This document shows, in pieces, positions 11,604 through 56,851 of a DNA stretch of 64,000 nt. Source of the DNA: Podarcis vaucheri (taxonomy: Eukaryota); NCBI GenBank assembly GCA_965113315.1, contig OZ220382.1. One strand, given 5' to 3'. A program made the translations under genes and the position numbers. The notes below the pieces were generated by a model. It worked only from the letters and a program-made list of their open reading frames with translations. It made no database searches and was not told where the DNA came from. Numbering within the stretch: the stretch's first letter is position 1; each line of letters starts with the position of its first letter.

Positions 11604-11790
11604 GGGCCATAGCTCAAGATACAGCATCTGCTTTGCATGCAGAAAATTCAAGGTTCAATCCCTAGCATCTTCAGAGAGGGCTGGGAAAGGCTCCCTAAAA
11701 CCATGAGAGCATCTGCCAGTCAGTGTAGACAGTACTGAGTTAGAGGGACCAATGGTCAACTGGGTATAAGCGAGCTTCCTACATTCCTAT
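11604..11790 (+). mobile_element. tRNA(Ala)-like SINE (Squam2-like); further copies near 15595-15791, 23227-23424, 28415-28572, 45186-45363 (+) and 3318-3455, 62700-62830 (-)
   Basis: Shared consensus tagctcagtggcagagcatctgctttgcatgcagaaggtcccaggttcaatccc...ctgccagtcagtgtagacaatactgagctagatggaccaatgg...gcagcttcctatgttcct. Confidence 0.75.
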
Positions 11791-15791: not shown

Positions 15792-18754
15792 ATGAAAGCA
15801 CTATTATGAAGCCTGATCATAATGACATGTAGCAATGACATGTGGCAATATGGCTAGTTATGGACAGATCAGCCTAAGTCCATTTTATGTCAGTTTCAAA
15901 TGTCTATTCTGTGCCAAATTTTGCAGACTTCCTGAAAGAATGTGCAAAATAATTGTTTACATTTGAATCTAAAATACCTGTTATGTATGCATTTGTTCCT
16001 TAAGAGACGTATTTTTGTGCATGTTTTTGGGGACTGCAACTATCTTACAAACCTGGAGAGTGGTGCAGTCTGACTGATAGTTGCATTCCAATCCACAAGC
16101 AAGTTTATCAACATCAGATTAGTCCACTGTGAATAGCAGGACTGTACCAATTCCTCTGTGAACATGTATTTTGGATTACATGGTAGAGTTAAGCCATATG
16201 GAAAAATTACTCCCCTGTTATCCTTTGGTACTGATTTCTGGCAACATCCATTTCTCGCATTATCCGAAGTGTGTCTTCCACACAGCTGAAAGACAGTCTC
16301 ATGAAGTATGCCATTGTTTTCTGTTTCAACAACTATTATACGTTAATGAATGTTCAAAAGTTAGTGAAAATTTACATTCCCATATATAGTTTGTAAATTT
16401 CTAAAATTAGTTGTATATCCTCCCCCCCCCTTTTTGGACATACACCATTGAGTGACTGAGTGCTAGCTATCACTTTTAGGTACAATTCAACATTCACTAA
16501 CATATTTTTCAGTTTTCGGCCATTCCCCGAATTCCTCTGAAATGATCAACATTCAACATACCTACCAACATCTACACAAGTAGATTAAGTTCCTGGCTTC
16601 AAAAGGTCACCCTCCAATTCCAGATAAACATAGTGGGGTGGGGGACAGGGACAGGGCTAGCATGCTTGTCCCTACATCACCTATATGTGTTTACACAACA
16701 CAGATTACAGATGCCTGAAAAAAGATACCATGGCATGTCATAATTCCAAAGGTCATTTTGTTGTTGGAACACAGATCACTGCAGTTGATTGACTTCTCTT
16801 TTTATCTTTACTTCTGTGAAAGGAAGGGATACACCTATCAGAAGAGCTGAGGTTTCCGTTCACTTAGTAACAACTTGGTATTTGAATTGCCTGGAAGAGC
16901 TTTTTACATGGGGAGATTAATGGCCATCGAGATAAAGACATTCTCCTGCTAAAAGAATTCATTTCGTTTAATCCTTTTGAAATTAGGAGATGATATGGAG
17001 AGATGAGTAATGAAGTGCACTCTCTGATTGTGAGTTACCTAATAGATAACCACAGGGGTTACTTTCTTCTCAGTAGCTGTAATTACACTAATTACTGATA
17101 TGGTGCTAAGGCAGATTGAGTGTGACAACACAAAATGGAGTGTTTCTTAGCAACATAAGATCTCCCTCTACCTCATCAGTTTGCTGAGAGGAGAGAACTT
17201 TAAAAGAGAGTGGATGAGTCCCATGGGGTTGGGAGGCATCAAGCAGGGCCTCCCAGATATAGGATCTTCGCCTTTTCCTATTTCCTGAAATTTCATTGGA
17301 ATCGCTTTGCTCGGATTCCATCTTTCAAATGAAAAAGCCTCACTCTGCAATGAGCAAGTCAGTTAAACAGTTTTCTGCCCATGAGTGGACCCACTTATTT
17401 CTGAAGGTTTACTCACAAGAGCAAAGCTTTGACTTAGCTGCAGAGAAACTTGTTGGCAAAACACACAACTTTTCAAGCAGAAGATCCCAATGCCTGGTGT
17501 CTCCAGATAGGGCTGTAAAGACCCTTGTCTGAAACCTTGGATGGCTGCTGCCATTCCCAGCCACCACTGAAAAGTATTGGGTAGCAAGAACCCAGAGAGT
17601 TGCTACCCATAAGAGTAAGTAGTGTTGGCTTAGGTGAAGCAATGTTTCAGTCTGATATAGGACAGCTTCCCATGACCAACTAGTTCAGCATGACACATGG
17701 GAGGATGTACTGTGTTTGGGATATTGGCTCAAAAAAATACAGCAACATCAACACTATTCAGTAATATTCAACGAACAAAGCCATAACCAAACACAACAAC
17801 AACCAATCATATGCATAAGCAACGCCTAAATAAATACACTAATTATGCTGTATTTTACTCACCTGGGAGTAAACTTATTGAACTCAATGGAACTTACTTC
17901 TGAATAGACATGTTTAGGGTTGCACAGTTAATACCATTCAATCACACTGTTGGTTATCATTAAAAAGTAGCTCAGCCTGCCTCATACAATCAGTTTTCAC
18001 TCCTGGAGTGCAAGCTGAAATTTTGCCAAGACTTGACCAGATTACCTCTGCACCTCTTCTCTGCTGCCAAAGATGTCCCTTGCATGATTCAGTTCTGCCA
18101 ATCTGTTTGTCATGGTGGTAGGGCAGTCAACCCAAAATGTTCTCCTTGCTCTGGGGGGCCTGCACTTATCTGTCACTGTACAGAATGTGGTTAACAACTT
18201 CAGGTATTTTATCTGTAAGAGGTTTAAATAAATAAAAAATTAAAAACCCAATGACCAAATTCACATTTCCTTCAGATGAATTTTCATATGAAAGGTGCTG
18301 TATCAATATTACATTTTAAAATCAATCCTGTGATTCATTTAATTTTTATCCAACCTTGCTACAAAATGATGCTCAAGGCAGCTTACCACAATAAGATACA
18401 TGGTATTTTTAATTAGTTTTAGTACTGTTTTCATTCTTTCCTATTTTATGTCATGACTTTATGCATCTACATTTTGTAAGTCACTCTGTGGGTGGCAGAC
18501 CCACTGAAATTCATGGACCTGACTAACAGCTGAGTCAATCAACTAATACATTAAGAGAAGTTGTCTCTAATATGTCCTACTCAGAGTTGATCCACTTAAA
18601 TCCATGGACCTAAGTCATTTCTTCAGTGAATCTACTGCAGGACTAAATTTGGATACTACTCGATGATGATGATATCAGCAAACAATATTATTAATATGAA
18701 AACTTTTCCGGGGGGGGGTGATTTGTTATTCTCTTCTAGCAAAAATACAACAAC

Positions 18755-23226: not shown

Positions 23227-23424
23227 AGGCAATCCCCAGTGACAGAGCATCTAATTTGCATGCAGAAGGTCCCAGGTTAAAACCCCAGCATCTTCAAGTA
23301 GATCTGGGAGAGTCTCCTTGTCTGAAATTCTTGAGGGTTTCTGCCAGTCAGTGTAGGCAATACTGAGTTAGATGGATCAATGCTCTGAACCAGTATAAGG
23401 CAGCTGACTGTGTTCTATGTTCCT
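23227..23424 (+). mobile_element. tRNA(Ala)-like SINE (Squam2-like)
   Basis: Same consensus as 11604-11790. Confidence 0.72.
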
Positions 23425-25429: not shown

Positions 25430-25783
25430 GGTAAAGGTAAAGGGATCCCTGACCATTAAGTCCAGTCGCGGACGACTCTGGGGTTGCGGCGCTCATCTCG
25501 CTTTATTGGCTGAGGCAGCCGGCGTACAGTTTCCGGGTCATGTGGCCAGCATGACTAAGCCGCTTCTGGTGAACCAGAGCAGCACATGGAAATGCCATTT
25601 ACCTTCCCACCAGAGTGGTGCCTATTTATCTACTTGCACTTTGACGTGCTTTCGAACTGCTAGGTGGGCAGGAGCAGGGACCGAGCAACGGGAACTCACC
25701 CCGTCGTGGGGATTCGAACCTCCAACCTTCTGATCGGCAAGCCCCAGGCTCTGTGGTTTAGACCACAGCGCCACCCGCGTCCC
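25430..25783 (-). mobile_element. Sauria SINE (Squam1), full length
   Basis: Minus strand: GGGACGCGGGTGGCGCTGTGG tRNA-like head, B box GGTTCGAATCC, (CCTTTA)n tail; degenerate 14-bp TSD tgttagtgaagtta (25416-25429) / tgttagtaatgtta (25784-25797). Confidence 0.92.
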
Positions 25784-34207: not shown

Positions 34208-34457
34208 AGAAGAAGAAGAGTTTGGATTTGATATCCCGCCTTTCACTCCCTTTAAGGAGTCTCAAAGCGGCTAACATTCTCCTTTCCCTTCCTCCCCCAC
34301 AACAAACACTCTGTGAGGTGAGTGGGGCTGAGAGACTTCAGTGTGACTGGCCCAAGGTCACCCAGCAGCTGCATGTGGAGGAGTGGGGAAGCGGAGACGC
34401 GAACCCGGTTCCCCAGATTACGAGTCTACTGCTCTTAACCACTATACCACACTGGCT
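34208..34457 (-). mobile_element. tRNA/CORE-type SINE, probably Squam3, abutting the first N gap
   Basis: Minus strand head agccagtgtggtatagtggttaagagc...gggttcgcg (A and B boxes), CORE-like gggtgaccttgggccagtcac, (CTT)n tail. Confidence 0.8.
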
Positions 34458-34623
34458 NNNNNNNNNNNNNNNNNNNNNNNNNNNNNNNNNNNNNNNNNNN
34501 NNNNNNNNNNNNNNNNNNNNNNNNNNNNNNNNNNNNNNNNNNNNNNNNNNNNNNNNNNNNNNNNNNNNNNNNNNNNNNNNNNNNNNNNNNNNNNNNNNNN
34601 NNNNNNNNNNNNNNNNNNNNNNN
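34458..34623. other. Assembly gap (166 N)
   Basis: N run at the left edge of the PLE locus. Confidence 0.99.
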
Positions 34624-35357
34624 TGTCTTCCCGTGTAAGAGTTGGGGTGTCTGGGCGACGTTTCGACGAGGTCTCACTCGTCATCTTCAGGCTGGTGCTT
34701 TCGGCTTCTTGTTACTGGAACAGAGCAGGGTCTTAGTGTTTGAGTTCCTATAAATACTGTTGAGGGGGTGTGGTGTATAGCCTCCAACGTTCTGGGCAGA
34801 GAGGAAGTTCCTAGATTAGTGTGCCTTTTCTTCTTTTGTTCCTTAATTACTTGAGGGATATCTTGAGTGATTTCATGAGTGATATTCTGAATACCACTTA
34901 GGTGGGTCATTAAGTGTGGATTAGTTGCTAAAGCTTTCGTGTCTTGACCTCTTGAGCTTGTGAAGAGTTTTTCGAAGATGGCTGTGCTGCATTTAGTTGT
35001 GCTCTGGCTTGGCTTCGTGTATAGGGGCGAGCTGTGGTTTTGTGCCCTGTGCCAGCCAGATCTGTGTAGGGATTGCAGGGGGGTGCAGCATCCGGAGGTG
35101 CCACTATAGTTTGGCTACTGGATGGAGTTTGTAATTTATCTGTGGAGAGGGTCTGGGTTTGGGTCTGGTGTGGTTGATTGGTGACGGCGTTCTGTGTGCC
35201 TCTGGTTCTGGTGTCGGTTTTTGTGGGGAGGGCTAATTTCCAGATGTCTGGCAGGCGGGACGTGTCGTCACGCTTGTTCATGTTGTGAGGGTGTTTCTCT
35301 ATCTCGATGGCTTCCATGATTATTCTCTTGTGGTGATGTTCCATGTTAAAGAGCAAT
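34624..35357 (-). repeat. 734-bp inverted repeat arm matching 36958-37691
   Basis: Paired positions sum to 72315 at both ends checked; ORF-track peptides from both arms are identical; no mismatch noticed by eye. Confidence 0.95.
34655..34694 (-). ncRNA. Minimal hammerhead ribozyme, inverted copy
   Basis: Reverse complement of 37621-37660. Confidence 0.78.
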
Positions 35358-37387
35358 CGACCAAAATCGACCCAGATGAAGCCAATAAAATCAGACTTGA
35401 AGTCACCAACATCCTCTGCTCCAGCAAACCACCCAGAAGCAATTTACACAAAGAAGAACAGAAAGCACTCACCAACCTGAGGAAAGACAACAACATAATC
35501 ATTCTCCCAGCAGACAAAGGCAATGCCACTGTTGTGATGAACACATCGGACTACCAAGCAAAACTATCAAATCTACTCCAAGACCCTACCTACCAACCTA
35601 TAAAAACAGATCCCACCACCTATCTGGAAAAAACCACCAAATCCAAAATAAAAGCCTCTCCTATCAGTGAAGAAATCCAGCTAAGAATCATCCCCAGAGA
35701 AAAATCATCCAGATGCCCCAAACTCTACGGTCTCCCCAAGATACACAAAGAAGGAACACCACTCAGACCAATAGTCAGCTCCATAGGCTCACCTCTACAA
35801 AATCTCGCTAAATTTCTCGCTAAGCAACTTCAGCCCTATGCAGAATCCATCGCTTCACACGTTACTAACTCCTTCCAGTTCATAGAAACAATAAAGAAGC
35901 AAAACCTACATCCCGATGACCTACTTGTAAGCTTCGATGTTGTATCTCTCTTCACTCAAGTGCCCATTAATGAAGCCTTGACAGCCATTCAAAACAAATA
36001 CAATCCCCCCGAATACATCCTGGACCTGACCAACCACTGCCTAACCAACACGTACTTCATCCATAATGGACAAAGATACAAACAGATAGAAGGAGCACCT
36101 ATGGGATCGCCCCTCTCACCGGTCATCGCAAATTTGTACATGGAACACTTTGAAACCAATGCTTTAGATAAGTCAGAACACAAACCCAAACTTTGGCTCA
36201 GATATGTTGACGACACCTTTGTAATTTGGCCACACGGGAAAGAAAAACTAGATAGCTTCCTCACACATCTCAACAGCCTACACCCCAAAATACAATTCAC
36301 TATGGAAATAGAAGACAACAACCAACTCCCCTTCCTTGACGTCCTAATCTACAAAAAACCTGATGGCTCCCTAGGACACACTATCTACCGGAAAAAAACA
36401 CACACCAACCGCTACTTACATGCACAATCACACCACCACCCTGCACAAATAAACTCCGTAGCCAAGACTCTCATCTCCAGAACCAAACGCCTGGCTGACA
36501 AAGACCACTTGACAACTGAGTTACAAAATCTCTCTAATGTGTTAATCGCCAATGGATACCAGCAAAACAGGGTTACCAAGCTAATCCAAAAAGAAACACC
36601 CCCCAAAAACCAAGACACAGAAGAAAACAATGGCATGGCCCTCCTTCCTTATATCAAGGGCACTACAGATAAAATTAGCAAAATCCTCCATAAACACAAT
36701 ATCAAAACAGCCTTCTGCACCAACCAAAAAATAGCCAATATCCTCAGAAACCCCAAAGACAAAATCCAGTTGGAAAACCAAGGGGTCTATGAAATACCCT
36801 GCAAAGTCTGCCCAGCCACGTACATTGGACAAACAAACAGACGAATAAATGCACGTATCGCAGAACACAAGAATGCCGTCAAAAAAGAAGAAAAAACTTC
36901 CTCTCTTTTCCAACACATGAAAGAAACAGGACACGAAATTAATTTTGCAGATTCCAAATTGCTCTTTAACATGGAACATCACCACAAGAGAATAATCATG
37001 GAAGCCATCGAGATAGAGAAACACCCTCACAACATGAACAAGCGTGACGACACGTCCCGCCTGCCAGACATCTGGAAATTAGCCCTCCCCACAAAAACCG
37101 ACACCAGAACCAGAGGCACACAGAACGCCGTCACCAATCAACCACACCAGACCCAAACCCAGACCCTCTCCACAGATAAATTACAAACTCCATCCAGTAG
37201 CCAAACTATAGTGGCACCTCCGGATGCTGCACCCCCCTGCAATCCCTACACAGATCTGGCTGGCACAGGGCACAAAACCACAGCTCGCCCCTATACACGA
37301 AGCCAAGCCAGAGCACAACTAAATGCAGCACAGCCATCTTCGAAAAACTCTTCACAAGCTCAAGAGGTCAAGACACGAAAGCTTTAG
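35358..37387 (+). CDS. PLE polyprotein, 5'-truncated but uninterrupted: reverse transcriptase + GIY-YIG endonuclease
   Basis: PADKGNATVV, LYGLPKIHK..PLRPIVS, LVSFDVVSLFT, GAPMGSPLSP, WLRYVDD (YVDD 36203-36214), LPFLDV; endonuclease GVYEIPCKVCPATYIGQT (36782-36829) with later FQHMKETGH completing the PLE CCHH motif. The first 24 aa of the ORF-track call (35285) come from the inverted segment. Confidence 0.96.
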
Positions 37388-37620
37388 CAACTAATCCACA
37401 CTTAATGACCCACCTAAGTGGTATTCAGAATATCACTCATGAAATCACTCAAGATATCCCTCAAGTAATTAAGGAACAAAAGAAGAAAAGGCACACTAAT
37501 CTAGGAACTTCCTCTCTGCCCAGAACGTTGGAGGCTATACACCACACCCCCTCAACAGTATTTATAGGAACTCAAACACTAAGACCCTGCTCTGTTCCAG
37601 TAACAAGAAGCCGAAAGCAC

Positions 37621-37660
37621 CAGCCTGAAGATGACGAGTGAGACCTCGTCGAAACGTCGC
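37621..37660 (+). ncRNA. Minimal type I hammerhead ribozyme in the PLE pseudo-LTR (copy A); predicted cleavage after C37658
   Basis: CTGAAGA-T-GACGAG-tgagac-CTCGTC-GAAAC-GTC: CUGANGA box, 6-bp stem II, GAAA box, palindromic ACGT in place of stem III, GUC triplet. Obvious stem I only 2 bp. Confidence 0.8.
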
Positions 37661-37832
37661 CCAGACACCCCAACTCTTACACGGGAAGACACCCGAAGAC
37701 ACCAAAACCTGCATTCCTGTACCCGTGAAAATCTACGAAAGCATATATGCTTTCGTAGATTTTCACGGGTACAGGAATGCAGGTTTTGGTGTCTTCGGGT
37801 GTCTTCCCGTGTAAGAGTCGGGGTGTCTGTGC
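37659..37832. repeat. 174-bp spacerless palindrome centred on GCATA|TATGC (37745/37746)
   Basis: Perfect over 37673-37818; two mismatched pairs outside that (37672/37819 and 37661/37830). Confidence 0.95.
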
Positions 37833-38310
37833 CACACCAGACCCAAACCCAGACCCTCTCCACAGACATATTACAGACTCCATCCAGTAGCCAAACTATA
37901 GTGGCACCTCCGGATGCTGCACCCCCCTGCAATCCCTACACAGATCTGGCTGGCACAAGGCACAAAACCATAGCTCGCCCCTATACACGAAGCCAAGCCA
38001 GAGCACAACTAAATGCAGCACAGCCATCTTCTCAGAAAAACTCTTCACAAGCTCAAGAGGTCAAGACACGAAAGCTTTAGCAACTAATCTACACTTAATG
38101 ACCCACCCAGTGATATTCTGAATATCACTCATGAAATCACCCAAGATATCCCTCAAGTAATTAAGGAACAAAAGAAGAAAAGGCACACTAATCTAGGAAC
38201 TTCCTCTTTGCCCAGAACGTTGGAGGCTATACACCACACCCCTCAACAGTATTTATAGGAACTCAAACACCAGACTCTGCTCTGTTCCAGTAACAAGAAG
38301 CCGAAAGCAC

Positions 38311-38350
38311 CAGCCTGAAGATGACGAGTGAGACCTCGTCGAAACGTCGC
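38311..38350 (+). ncRNA. Minimal hammerhead ribozyme (copy B); predicted cleavage after C38348
   Basis: Core identical to 37625-37658, 690 nt downstream. Confidence 0.8.
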
Positions 38351-38399
38351 ACAGACACCCCGACTCTTACACGGGAAGACACCCGAAGACACCAAAACC

Positions 38400-38815
38400 N
38401 NNNNNNNNNNNNNNNNNNNNNNNNNNNNNNNNNNNNNNNNNNNNNNNNNNNNNNNNNNNNNNNNNNNNNNNNNNNNNNNNNNNNNNNNNNNNNNNNNNNN
38501 NNNNNNNNNNNNNNNNNNNNNNNNNNNNNNNNNNNNNNNNNNNNNNNNNNNNNNNNNNNNNNNNNNNNNNNNNNNNNNNNNNNNNNNNNNNNNNNNNNNN
38601 NNNNNNNNNNNNNNNNNNNNNNNNNNNNNNNNNNNNNNNNNNNNNNNNNNNNNNNNNNNNNNNNNNNNNNNNNNNNNNNNNNNNNNNNNNNNNNNNNNNN
38701 NNNNNNNNNNNNNNNNNNNNNNNNNNNNNNNNNNNNNNNNNNNNNNNNNNNNNNNNNNNNNNNNNNNNNNNNNNNNNNNNNNNNNNNNNNNNNNNNNNNN
38801 NNNNNNNNNNNNNNN
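38400..38815. other. Assembly gap (416 N)
   Basis: N run at the right edge of the PLE locus. Confidence 0.99.
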
Positions 38816-41386: not shown

Positions 41387-41728
41387 GGTAAAGGTACCCC
41401 TGCCCGTACGGGCCAGTCGTGTCCGACTCTAGGGTTGTGCGCTCATCTCACTCTATAGGCCGGGAGCCAGCGCTGTCCGCAGACACTTCTGGCCATCGTG
41501 ACAAGCTGCATCTGGCGAGCCAGCGCAGCACATGGAACGCCGTTTACCTTCCCGCTGGTAAGCGGTCCCTATTTATCTACTTGCACCTGGGGGTGCTTTC
41601 GAACTGCTAGGTTGGCAGGCGCTGGAACCAAACGACGGGAGCGCACCCCGCCGCGGGGATTCGAACCACTGACCATGCGATCGGCAAGTCCTAGGCACTG
41701 AGGTTTTACCCACAGCACCAGCCGCGTC

Positions 41729-41730
<2 letters not shown>
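41384..41730 (-). mobile_element. Sauria SINE, different subfamily, between (TG)n 41348-41383 and (AT)n 41731-41774
   Basis: Same head, B box and tail; distinct 3' end (aaaggtacccctgcccgtacgggccagtcg); many CpGs retained. Confidence 0.9.
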
Positions 41731-54578: not shown

Positions 54579-54930
54579 GGGAACGCAGGTGGTGCTGTGA
54601 GTTAAACCACAGAGCCTAGGACTTGCCAATCAGAAGGTTGGCAGTTCAAATCCCCGCAACGGGGTGAGCTCCTGTCGCTCGGTCCCTGATCCTGCCAACC
54701 TAGCAGTTCAAAAGAACGTCAAAGTGCAAGTAGATAAATAGGTACCGCTCTGGCAGGAAGCTAAACGGTGTTTCCGTGCGCTGCTCTGGTTCGCCAGAAG
54801 TGGCTTAGTCATGCTGGCTACATGACCCGGAAGCTGTACGCCGGCTCCCTCGGCCAATAAAGCGAGATGAGCGCCGCAACCCCAGAGTCGGTCATGACTG
54901 GACCTAATGGTCAGGGGTCCCTTTACCTTT
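54579..54930 (+). mobile_element. Sauria SINE, full length
   Basis: tRNA-like head, body closely matching the reverse complement of 25430-25783, tail ccctttaccttt. Confidence 0.92.
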
Positions 54931-56851
54931 AATGAAGGTTAAGGGTAAAAATAACCACCCCTTTTTGGCTGGAACTGCAGTAGCACAAGCTGGCTGCTGC
55001 TGAAAAATGTGTTTGCTGTATTTCTTTAACTTGTTTTTATGGAGGATAAATAATGGCTACTAGCCATGGCTACTAGCCATGATGAGTTTGCTCTGAATCC
55101 AAAGGAGGGGAGAGTGCTCTTGCGCTTGCAGATTTCGCACAGGTATCAGCCACCTGGGTGGCCACTATGAGAAGAGGATGGTGGACTAGATGGGCCTTTG
55201 GCTTGATCCAGCAGGGATCTTCTTTGGTTCTTGAAACAGCAGCTTTTCCTTTTCCTTTTCCGCTTGTTATTCCTGCAAAGAGATTTTAGAAAGAAAGGTG
55301 GGGGGAGAGAAAGCAGATCATCAAGTATTTTTGTGACTGTTGGCAAAACATTCTTCTATCAGAAGATTCCCAGTAGAGATATAAGAATGGTCAATCGAGT
55401 TAATCAATTGAATATTGTTTTTCCACCCCACCCAGCGCAGCTTCAGAGGCCAATATAGCCATGGTTGTCTGTGATAATTTGGTCTTAGCTTTAGTCAATT
55501 TGCCATTGATTTACACTACAGTTGGGTGGCTGTTGTTTTTTGAAGGATGTTTTGCAAAGCAAATGGCACTAAGGGTGTTTAGCTGGGTTCAGTGGACCAA
55601 AGCAATGACAAGAGAATGTTGGGGCAAGGCTGCAAGACCTCAAAGTAGCGACTTCTGTTTCTCCCTATTTCTCATTTTCCCAGTCTTAGGTTCAATTCAC
55701 TCCTAGTATACTCATTTTTGTATGCGAATTTGCCCCATATGCAGATTTTTGCAAGCACGTTTCGCAAATATAATACATTCCTGAATATAATGCGATGTTA
55801 TTTTCACTAACATATATGCTTTTTAATGCACATACTTTCATAAATGCAGAATAATCTGCAACATGTTTTGCATAATATTTAGTTTATCCATAAGTTTATG
55901 GAGTTGCAGCTCATGTTAGTTCTACTCAGAGTAGATCCACTGAAATTAATGGAGATGTTTAACTTGGGTTTATTCACTTCAGTGGGTCTACACTATGTAG
56001 AACGTAGTTGGATACAACCCATAGTAAAGGGAAGAATTTGTCTTCAGTAGTTACACAAGAAACAGATGTAAAGCAAACATGAAGTTGCACCAGATCCAAA
56101 CCCCATTCAACAGCAGGGATACTGCTTTGTCCAAGCAGGGCAAAACAATCCTTTAAAAGAGTGCTTTTTGCAGGGTTGCTAATTCATACAGAGAAGGATT
56201 TAGGGCACTGTGACCAGTTCTACCGCACGGGGAAAGGGAGCAGCTTCCCAAAATTTGTAAGCACTGAGACATGAGAGCTCTAGAACCCTGCTAGAACCTC
56301 ACATCTTCTCAAAGCCCAGTGACTCCCTTACCCAGTTTTGGGAAGGCAGCATGAGGGCTGGATATCAAATTTTGGGCTCACTCAGGACATCACATGGTCA
56401 AACTGAATGGGCTTAGGATCCAGCCTAATTTCACAGACCCAGACCCAGCCCTGCCACAGCTGTTTTGGTTGACATTCATGGGCCTCAGCTCAGGTAGCTG
56501 AGCTCCATCTAAACTGGGATGAGCAAGTTTGCAGTGGCGTAACTTTTGCTGAGCCAGGGTTGGGGACTTAACTTCAATTGATCCTGCAAGCAACCAGCTG
56601 AGCTGAATCTTGCTAGGCGATTGCCCCCTCAGTCTTTCCTTGTGGAAAGACTGAAATTGCAATACTAGTATGGCAATACATCTGAAATTGCAATACTATC
56701 CCACACACACATACACCGAGGTTGTGTACATACCATACATTTAAACACACATAAAACACAAAGACTCATGGCAACTGCACTTTGCCCTTCACGGATCTAC
56801 CGTGCTCAGCACTCTTAGCAAGCTAAAATTCTCAGGATTCTTTGGGAGAAG

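Follow-up and report, generated by a model that had tools for sequence, protein, structure and literature searches.

The palindrome in this lizard genome is best read as the meeting point of two independent, ordinary insertions of a Penelope-like element (PLE), lying tail-to-tail in one (TA)n site. One short inverted arm stops at the predicted hammerhead cleavage site (GUC|G; | denotes the cleavage position), and in this reading, to which we give a probability of about 0.5, that stop is a chance or early one. The region is part of the window that we analysed, a stretch of 64,000 nt from Podarcis vaucheri (contig OZ220382.1), in which all coordinates below are counted.

An island of Poseidon-type sequence between two assembly gaps

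The element occupies a 3776-nt island (34624-38399) enclosed by two runs of N, at 34458-34623 and 38400-38815. Repeat analysis divided this island into four pieces: a left arm, a forward copy, a spacer-less palindrome and a second forward piece (37832-38399). The left arm (34624-35357, minus strand) is an inverted, 5′-truncated copy, the reverse complement of 36958-37691 with 100% identity over 734 nt, and carries its own minus-strand hammerhead with GUC at 34657-34659. It adjoins a forward, 5′-truncated copy (35358-37744, plus strand; copy 1), in which an open reading frame (ORF) for reverse transcriptase (RT) and putative GIY-YIG domains is followed by the 3′ region and a hammerhead. Behind this hammerhead come ~114 nt of the next unit's ORF, and the copy terminates at a reverse-transcription start site.

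Beyond the ATATAT at the centre of the palindrome (37743-37748) lies a short inverted arm of 84 nt (37749-37832, minus strand), an antisense copy of ORF nucleotides +29 to +112. The remainder of the island is a second forward, 5′-truncated copy (37832-38399, plus strand; copy 2), which equals 37142-37709 at 96-98% identity, has its own hammerhead with GUC at 38346-38348, and extends into the right-hand gap. Because the flanks lie in the gaps, target duplications and the full outline of the insertions are out of view: the left gap conceals the 3′ end of the left arm and its flank, the right gap the 3′ end belonging to copy 2 and its flank. A blastn search of the whole window with the element found no further copies.

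The window also holds repeats of other kinds. A tRNA-like match (30 bits) at 11610-11665 lies beside dispersed 61-nt repeats (11697-11757, 17587-17647 and 23325-23385), and together they are probably a SINE of tRNA origin; a SINE tail is also suggested by the sequence to the left of the island (34380-34457). Another dispersed family, unrelated to the PLE, is present at 25432-25783, 54580-54931 and 41561-41730 with 81-88% identity in both orientations.

Copy 1, beginning at 35358, contains a 700-codon ORF that ends at 37387. Its RT domain matched Pfam RVT_1 with E=6.6e-16 (59 bits, cut-off 29.6), while the putative GIY-YIG domain at its C-terminus gave a weak match under the Pfam cut-off (E=8e-4; 20.1 bits, cut-off 22.6); homologues align across the GIY-YIG region and carry precomputed PF26215 and PF28514 assignments. 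Protein identity is highest to Podarcis muralis (97%); it is 82% for Vipera latastei and 47% for a protein of Anolis carolinensis that is near-identical to the published Poseidon_Ac translation. Judged by its sequence, the element is a Poseidon-type PLE of a lacertid lizard, present at very high copy number. Its two head-to-head pairs, each an inverted 5′-truncated copy beside a forward one, are of the partial-tandem or complex kind of insertion that is a feature of PLEs. A BLASTP comparison of the first 39 residues of the ORF with Anolis Poseidon found no significant match; it is the nucleotide layout and the distances, rather than any similarity of the peptides, that support the proposed correspondence of the two ORF starts.

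We compared 35358-37900 with contigs and reads from four runs, namely two DNA samples of one species (runs X1 and X12, the latter from another study under the same species label) and one DNA and one raw RNA sample of a sister species (runs X4 and X24). Summed word depths of 10^5 to 10^6 in these data show that the family is extremely abundant. One Podarcis muralis 'uncharacterized protein' (P0001) begins with 37 residues that are an antisense translation of the RT region, comparable to the minus-strand ORF at 35989-36321, and continues in the sense ORF; its gene model spans another head-to-head PLE junction, with a different breakpoint.

The short inverted arm belongs to a second insertion

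The four pieces resolve into two separate PLE insertions, A (left arm and copy 1) and B (short arm and copy 2), because the two arms of A are identical to each other while the short arm has the diagnostic variants of copy 2. Copy 2 is 2-4% divergent from copy 1. Over the 51 nt that can be compared, the short arm has no mismatch to copy 2; against copy 1 it has two mismatches in 84 nt, and at both positions (the equivalents of 37661 and 37672) it shows the copy-2 base, A and G, respectively. Insertion A has its own junction, at the equivalent of 36958/35358.

These variants bear on two points of interpretation. A reading of copy 2 as a pseudo-LTR of copy 1 was rejected, since its divergence, together with the variants that it has in common with the short arm, identifies it as a separate insertion instead. 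In the preliminary description, the short arm had been taken for the mirror of the neighbouring tail, from which it differs at the two positions just given. A fold-back of insertion A's own tail, considered as a source of the arm, is made very improbable by the same pattern.

Summed depth over 37823-37900, where the copy-2-type sequence starts, equals that of the neighbouring bin in run X1, and is 7-fold lower in X12 and about 60-fold lower in X4. This seems to reflect a subfamily composition that differs between samples, or an uneven assignment of contigs that match in two places.

Two 3′ ends meet at a reverse-transcription start site in a (TA)n target

The arms of the spacer-less palindrome, 37656-37745 and 37746-37835, are 97% complementary. 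A base-by-base check found the homology of the inverted arm to be unbroken up to C37832, the complement of G37659, which is the first base after GUC. Forward homology, equivalent to 37142 onward, begins at the same C37832, so that the two overlap by 1 nt: position 37833 breaks the arm homology and 37831 breaks the forward match. With the ATATAT centre set aside, the arm proper runs from 37749 to 37832 and is 84 to 86 nt long. Extending the arm to 37835 was rejected as less parsimonious, since it needs a mismatch at 37833. In the assembly, the stop at the mirror of G37659 reported in the preliminary description is thus correct to the nucleotide, with an ambiguity of 1 nt, and so is the jump to the forward equivalent of 37142 with a 1-nt C microhomology.

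On both strands, the palindrome (37670-37821) also matches Rfam MIR537, a plant microRNA family, at 80-83 bits (gathering score 100). This MIR537/mir-2208 match is a spurious hairpin artefact and not a microRNA.

Loose ends, where contigs or reads leave the element, place the centre of the palindrome at a recurrent 3′ end of the family. Those with (TA)n before 37743 number 20 records in X12, 35 in X4 and 7 in X24, and those with (AT)n behind 37748 number 28 in X4 and 25 in X24. A second set of 9 records in X24 lies behind 37714, so that the family has two 3′ ends 34 nt apart, one at ORF position +84 and the other at +112 to +118, bounding a 34-nt tail (37715-37748, plus strand). The loose-end consensus in X12, X4 and X24 is (TA)n, indicating a preference for AT-rich or (TA)n targets. 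In Anolis Poseidon, two internal reverse-transcription start sites bound a tail of ~34 nt (nucleotides 85-119 of the ORF), the main start site maps in vitro to +111 to +118, and targets are AT-rich (PMC11167929). The start sites and 34-nt tail of the lizard family match those mapped in Anolis.

Because the family's start sites and (TA)n flanks coincide there, ATATAT is the meeting point of the 3′ ends of insertion A's forward copy and insertion B's inverted arm in one (TA)n site, a remnant of target or priming overlap. GCAT precedes both 3′ ends of the family (37709-37714 and 37739-37744), with (AT)n behind them in other copies, and both start sites of Anolis Poseidon likewise end in CAT. The common GCAT/CAT hints at pairing of a (TA)n primer with AU at the start site; the Anolis study reported no homology to the cleaved DNA (PMC11167929).

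The spacer-less palindrome adjoining an AT-rich centre could also have arisen at the DNA level, through hairpin or snap-back repair or replication template switching at the tail of insertion A, unrelated to retrotransposition. We consider such a fold-back very improbable: the arm departs from the adjacent tail at 2 of 84 sites, both of them copy-2 variants, and so was not copied from it; moreover, the palindrome's centre falls on the site where the family starts reverse transcription and on its (TA)n target.

An assembly chimera, in which the junction at 37832 or the link at the centre joins different loci, deserves somewhat more weight and is still unlikely. The island is a short contig with N gaps on both sides, made of a repeat in thousands of copies with the word depths given above, and no contig bridging 37832 was found among those listed for the four runs against 35358-37900. 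A collapsed repeat would also leave arms as identical as the 734-nt arms of insertion A, and a published warning states that tandem and inverted PLE structures break short-read assemblies. Against this, the short arm has copy-2-type variants matching its neighbour rather than the commoner copy-1 type, which argues for a haplotype that is consistent locally; a single read can cover both the centre and the junction, separated by only ~90 nt; and the structure is exactly the one that biology predicts.

A model of two target-primed insertions

How the insertions are built, which variants they carry, where reverse transcription starts, what the (TA)n target is and where the hammerhead motif sits can all be read off directly; we infer the order of events and the end-to-end jump as follows. 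The element's protein would nick both DNA strands and prime reverse transcription on both, giving the head-to-head form of insertions A and B; the Anolis Poseidon protein cuts and extends both strands (PMC11167929). Each cDNA would begin at the GCAU that serves as internal start site (ORF positions +112 to +118), and because each starts at this same site, the two 3′ ends would form a palindrome around ATATAT. For insertion B, the 3′-OH of the top strand would have primed a short cDNA that ended at +29, after 84-86 nt. The bottom-strand cDNA would have extended to the equivalent of 37142, and the end of the short cDNA may then have paired with its 3′ end or jumped there, leaving the 1-nt overlap as in twin priming.

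The data support the short arm being a short target-primed cDNA, separately primed and joined by a template jump, and not a DNA-level inversion, since the arm has its outer end where the family starts reverse transcription.

A minimal hammerhead motif overlaps the ORF start

A minimal type-I hammerhead motif (37620-37660, plus strand) has the core and layout of Anolis Poseidon and of the published minimal PLE hammerheads. Its core elements occur in order and with the expected spacing: CUGAAGA at 37625-37631, GAAA at 37651-37654 and GUC at 37656-37658. In the predicted fold, the 6-bp stem II pairs 37633-37638 with 37645-37650 (GACGAG/CUCGUC), and U37632 is bulged and unpaired. The ATG of the ORF, at 37631, lies inside the core, and the canonical cut is predicted at 37658|37659, equal to +28|+29 of the ORF.

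There is no helix III loop, and the palindromic ACGU at 37654-37657 makes helix III possible only as a dimer. By eye, helix I consists of only two pairs, G37659:C37624 and C37660:G37623, and predicted folds do not contain it. Published minimal PLE hammerheads have a long stem II with a bulged base on its 5′ side, a short helix I and no helix III loop, and hence act as dimers (PMC4209133). The Rfam hammerhead models gave no match, either at the gathering threshold or at E-values up to 10, which weighs little, since motifs that lack helix III are expected to go unmatched. When the motif was folded thermodynamically as a dimer, the intermolecular helix III did not form, a result to which we give no weight either way.

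Some PLE copies are cut off right at the 5′ edge of the hammerhead, as seen from RNA loose ends before 37622 and 37624 in run X24. These truncations represent two expressed loci of the sister species with differing upstream sequence, covered by 8 and 7 reads in full agreement. Half of the RNA reads laid on the element in this run continue into unlike sequence, and most PLE expression is therefore read-through from host transcripts.

Was the template of the short arm cut by the ribozyme?

The arm had been proposed to be a cDNA of the 3′ cleavage product, made by an RT that ran off the cut end and switched template. Half of this proposal agrees with our data, in that the arm reads as a separately primed cDNA with its outer end at a start site and a 1-nt join to the next segment. 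The other half, a ribozyme-cut template, has a single junction to its credit and no peak of ends among those listed. In detail, the top-strand cDNA of insertion B would have been primed at the normal site on hammerhead-cut RNA, cut either beforehand or while engaged by the protein; after 84-86 nt, RT would have run off at the 5′-OH of G37659 and made an end-to-end jump to the other cDNA, so that the arm would be a fossil of in vivo cleavage. We hold this origin to be possible, at less than even odds.

Its appeal lies in the position of the stop. The end of the arm falls within 0-1 nt of GUC|G with an overlap of only 1 nt, and the arm spans exactly the predicted 3′ cleavage product as far as the priming site. 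We estimate the chance of such a stop at ~0.2-0.6%, counting one arm with a length free to vary between tens and about a thousand nucleotides; this junction, however, was flagged because of its coincidence. An RNA end would also be a natural donor for an end-to-end template jump.

Other copies give a divided picture. One independent contig from the same species (run X1) has a segment that starts exactly at 37659: the end of another copy and (AT)4 come first, next 24 scrambled bases that derive in part from the antisense of 37595-37609, and finally the segment. Among the ~40 start positions listed, though, one exact hit would be expected by chance in about 10% of cases; one junction and one contig make up the tally among the contigs listed. 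The peak of breakpoints at GUC|G for which the preliminary description had proposed a test is absent from the loose ends listed: there is none at 37659, even though the listing for X12 included places with only 1-4 contigs, among 157 partly matching contigs. Moreover, in another contig an inverted arm that stops at the mirror of 37667 (+37) is joined to about 37536, and breakpoints elsewhere are common, including contigs that start at 37320 and 37588, the junction of insertion A, P0001, and the RNA truncations at 37622/37624. A protein search with an ORF reading through the palindrome, aimed at breakpoints in other copies, gave no candidates, and we found no paper in the literature reporting PLE breakpoints at a hammerhead site.

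Likewise, neither the starts nor the ends of RNA reads from the sister species pile up at 37659, where depth is about 80 and the one-fifth threshold applied would miss minor cleavage. No position in this run has such a pile-up, and depth is level over 37568-37737. The Anolis Poseidon hammerhead, which has the same layout, does cleave in vitro, though only with the element's protein, and Anolis RNA starting at +20 still supports insertion; the same study, however, reports no RNA ends at the cut in vivo and insertion products in vitro that were unchanged by hammerhead mutations (PMC11167929). The two clear pairs of helix I, and a motif that Rfam models do not score, also count against cleavage here.

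Weighing these points, we find an early stop or jump that fell at GUC|G by chance slightly more likely than a proven trace of cleavage. As a tentative generalization, which we put below an even chance, cDNAs of 84-86 nt ending at GUC|G may be run-off products on a hammerhead-cut template engaged by the Penelope protein, the cut lying ~85 nt upstream of the priming site.

Implications for the PLE hammerhead

The role of the PLE hammerhead has been open since 2014, and the only biochemical study, in Anolis, found protein-assisted cleavage in vitro, insertion that was unaffected and, in vivo, no RNA ending at the site. A true pile-up of junctions at GUC|G would mean that the genome records in vivo cleavage and would place it after assembly of the ribonucleoprotein. 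If the arm is indeed a run-off product, it would be the first in vivo evidence that a minimal PLE hammerhead cuts, with cutting either aborting the cDNA or setting its length. If there is no such pile-up, the locus would be a textbook compound PLE insertion, and the start-site and tail rules of Anolis would extend to lacertid lizards.

Comparison with known systems

A parallel for the join itself is the 5′ inversion of LINE-1, which Ostertag and Kazazian reportedly explained in 2001 by twin priming, with two cDNAs from two DNA ends joined head-to-head at a microhomology. Here, too, the join is head-to-head at a short microhomology with the 3′ ends outward. In LINE-1, unlike here, the second primer finds its annealing site within the same RNA, which puts the inverted part 5′ of the forward one. 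Both cDNAs of the lizard insertion instead begin at one internal start site and share part of their content, and therefore imply two templates or a multi-unit RNA.

In R2 and other non-LTR elements, an HDV-like ribozyme is reported to set the 5′ end of the RNA (Eickbush and Eickbush 2010), as seen in genomic 5′ junctions, and the idea of a template end made by a self-cleaving ribozyme is common to both cases. In R2, the ribozyme end reportedly defines the full-length 5′ junction of most copies, whereas cleavage here would leave an abortive 84-nt copy, and the loose ends listed here show no family-wide peak at the cleavage site.

The minimal hammerheads of Cervera and de la Peña (2014; PMC4209133) resemble the present motif in stem II, the bulge, the short helix I and the palindromic ACGU. 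In contrast to theirs, the hammerhead here is a predicted one, and its helix I has only 2 obvious pairs.

The system most like ours is Poseidon_Ac (PAc; Frangieh et al. 2024, PMC11167929). The two proteins are only 47% identical, and the host here belongs to Lacertidae; for PAc, neither genomic nor RNA ends are reported at the hammerhead site, whereas we have one junction and one contig. Both elements encode a single ORF with RT and, at its C-terminus, GIY-YIG (putative here), and in both the ATG lies inside the hammerhead core, GAAACGUC being followed by the cut, which falls at 29|30 in PAc and at +28/29 here. They also share an AT-rich or (TA)n target and two internal start sites (about +85 and +111 to +119), each ending in CAT, with a 34-nt tail between them. 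Finally, both strands are extended in either system, which would account for the inverted-plus-forward copies.
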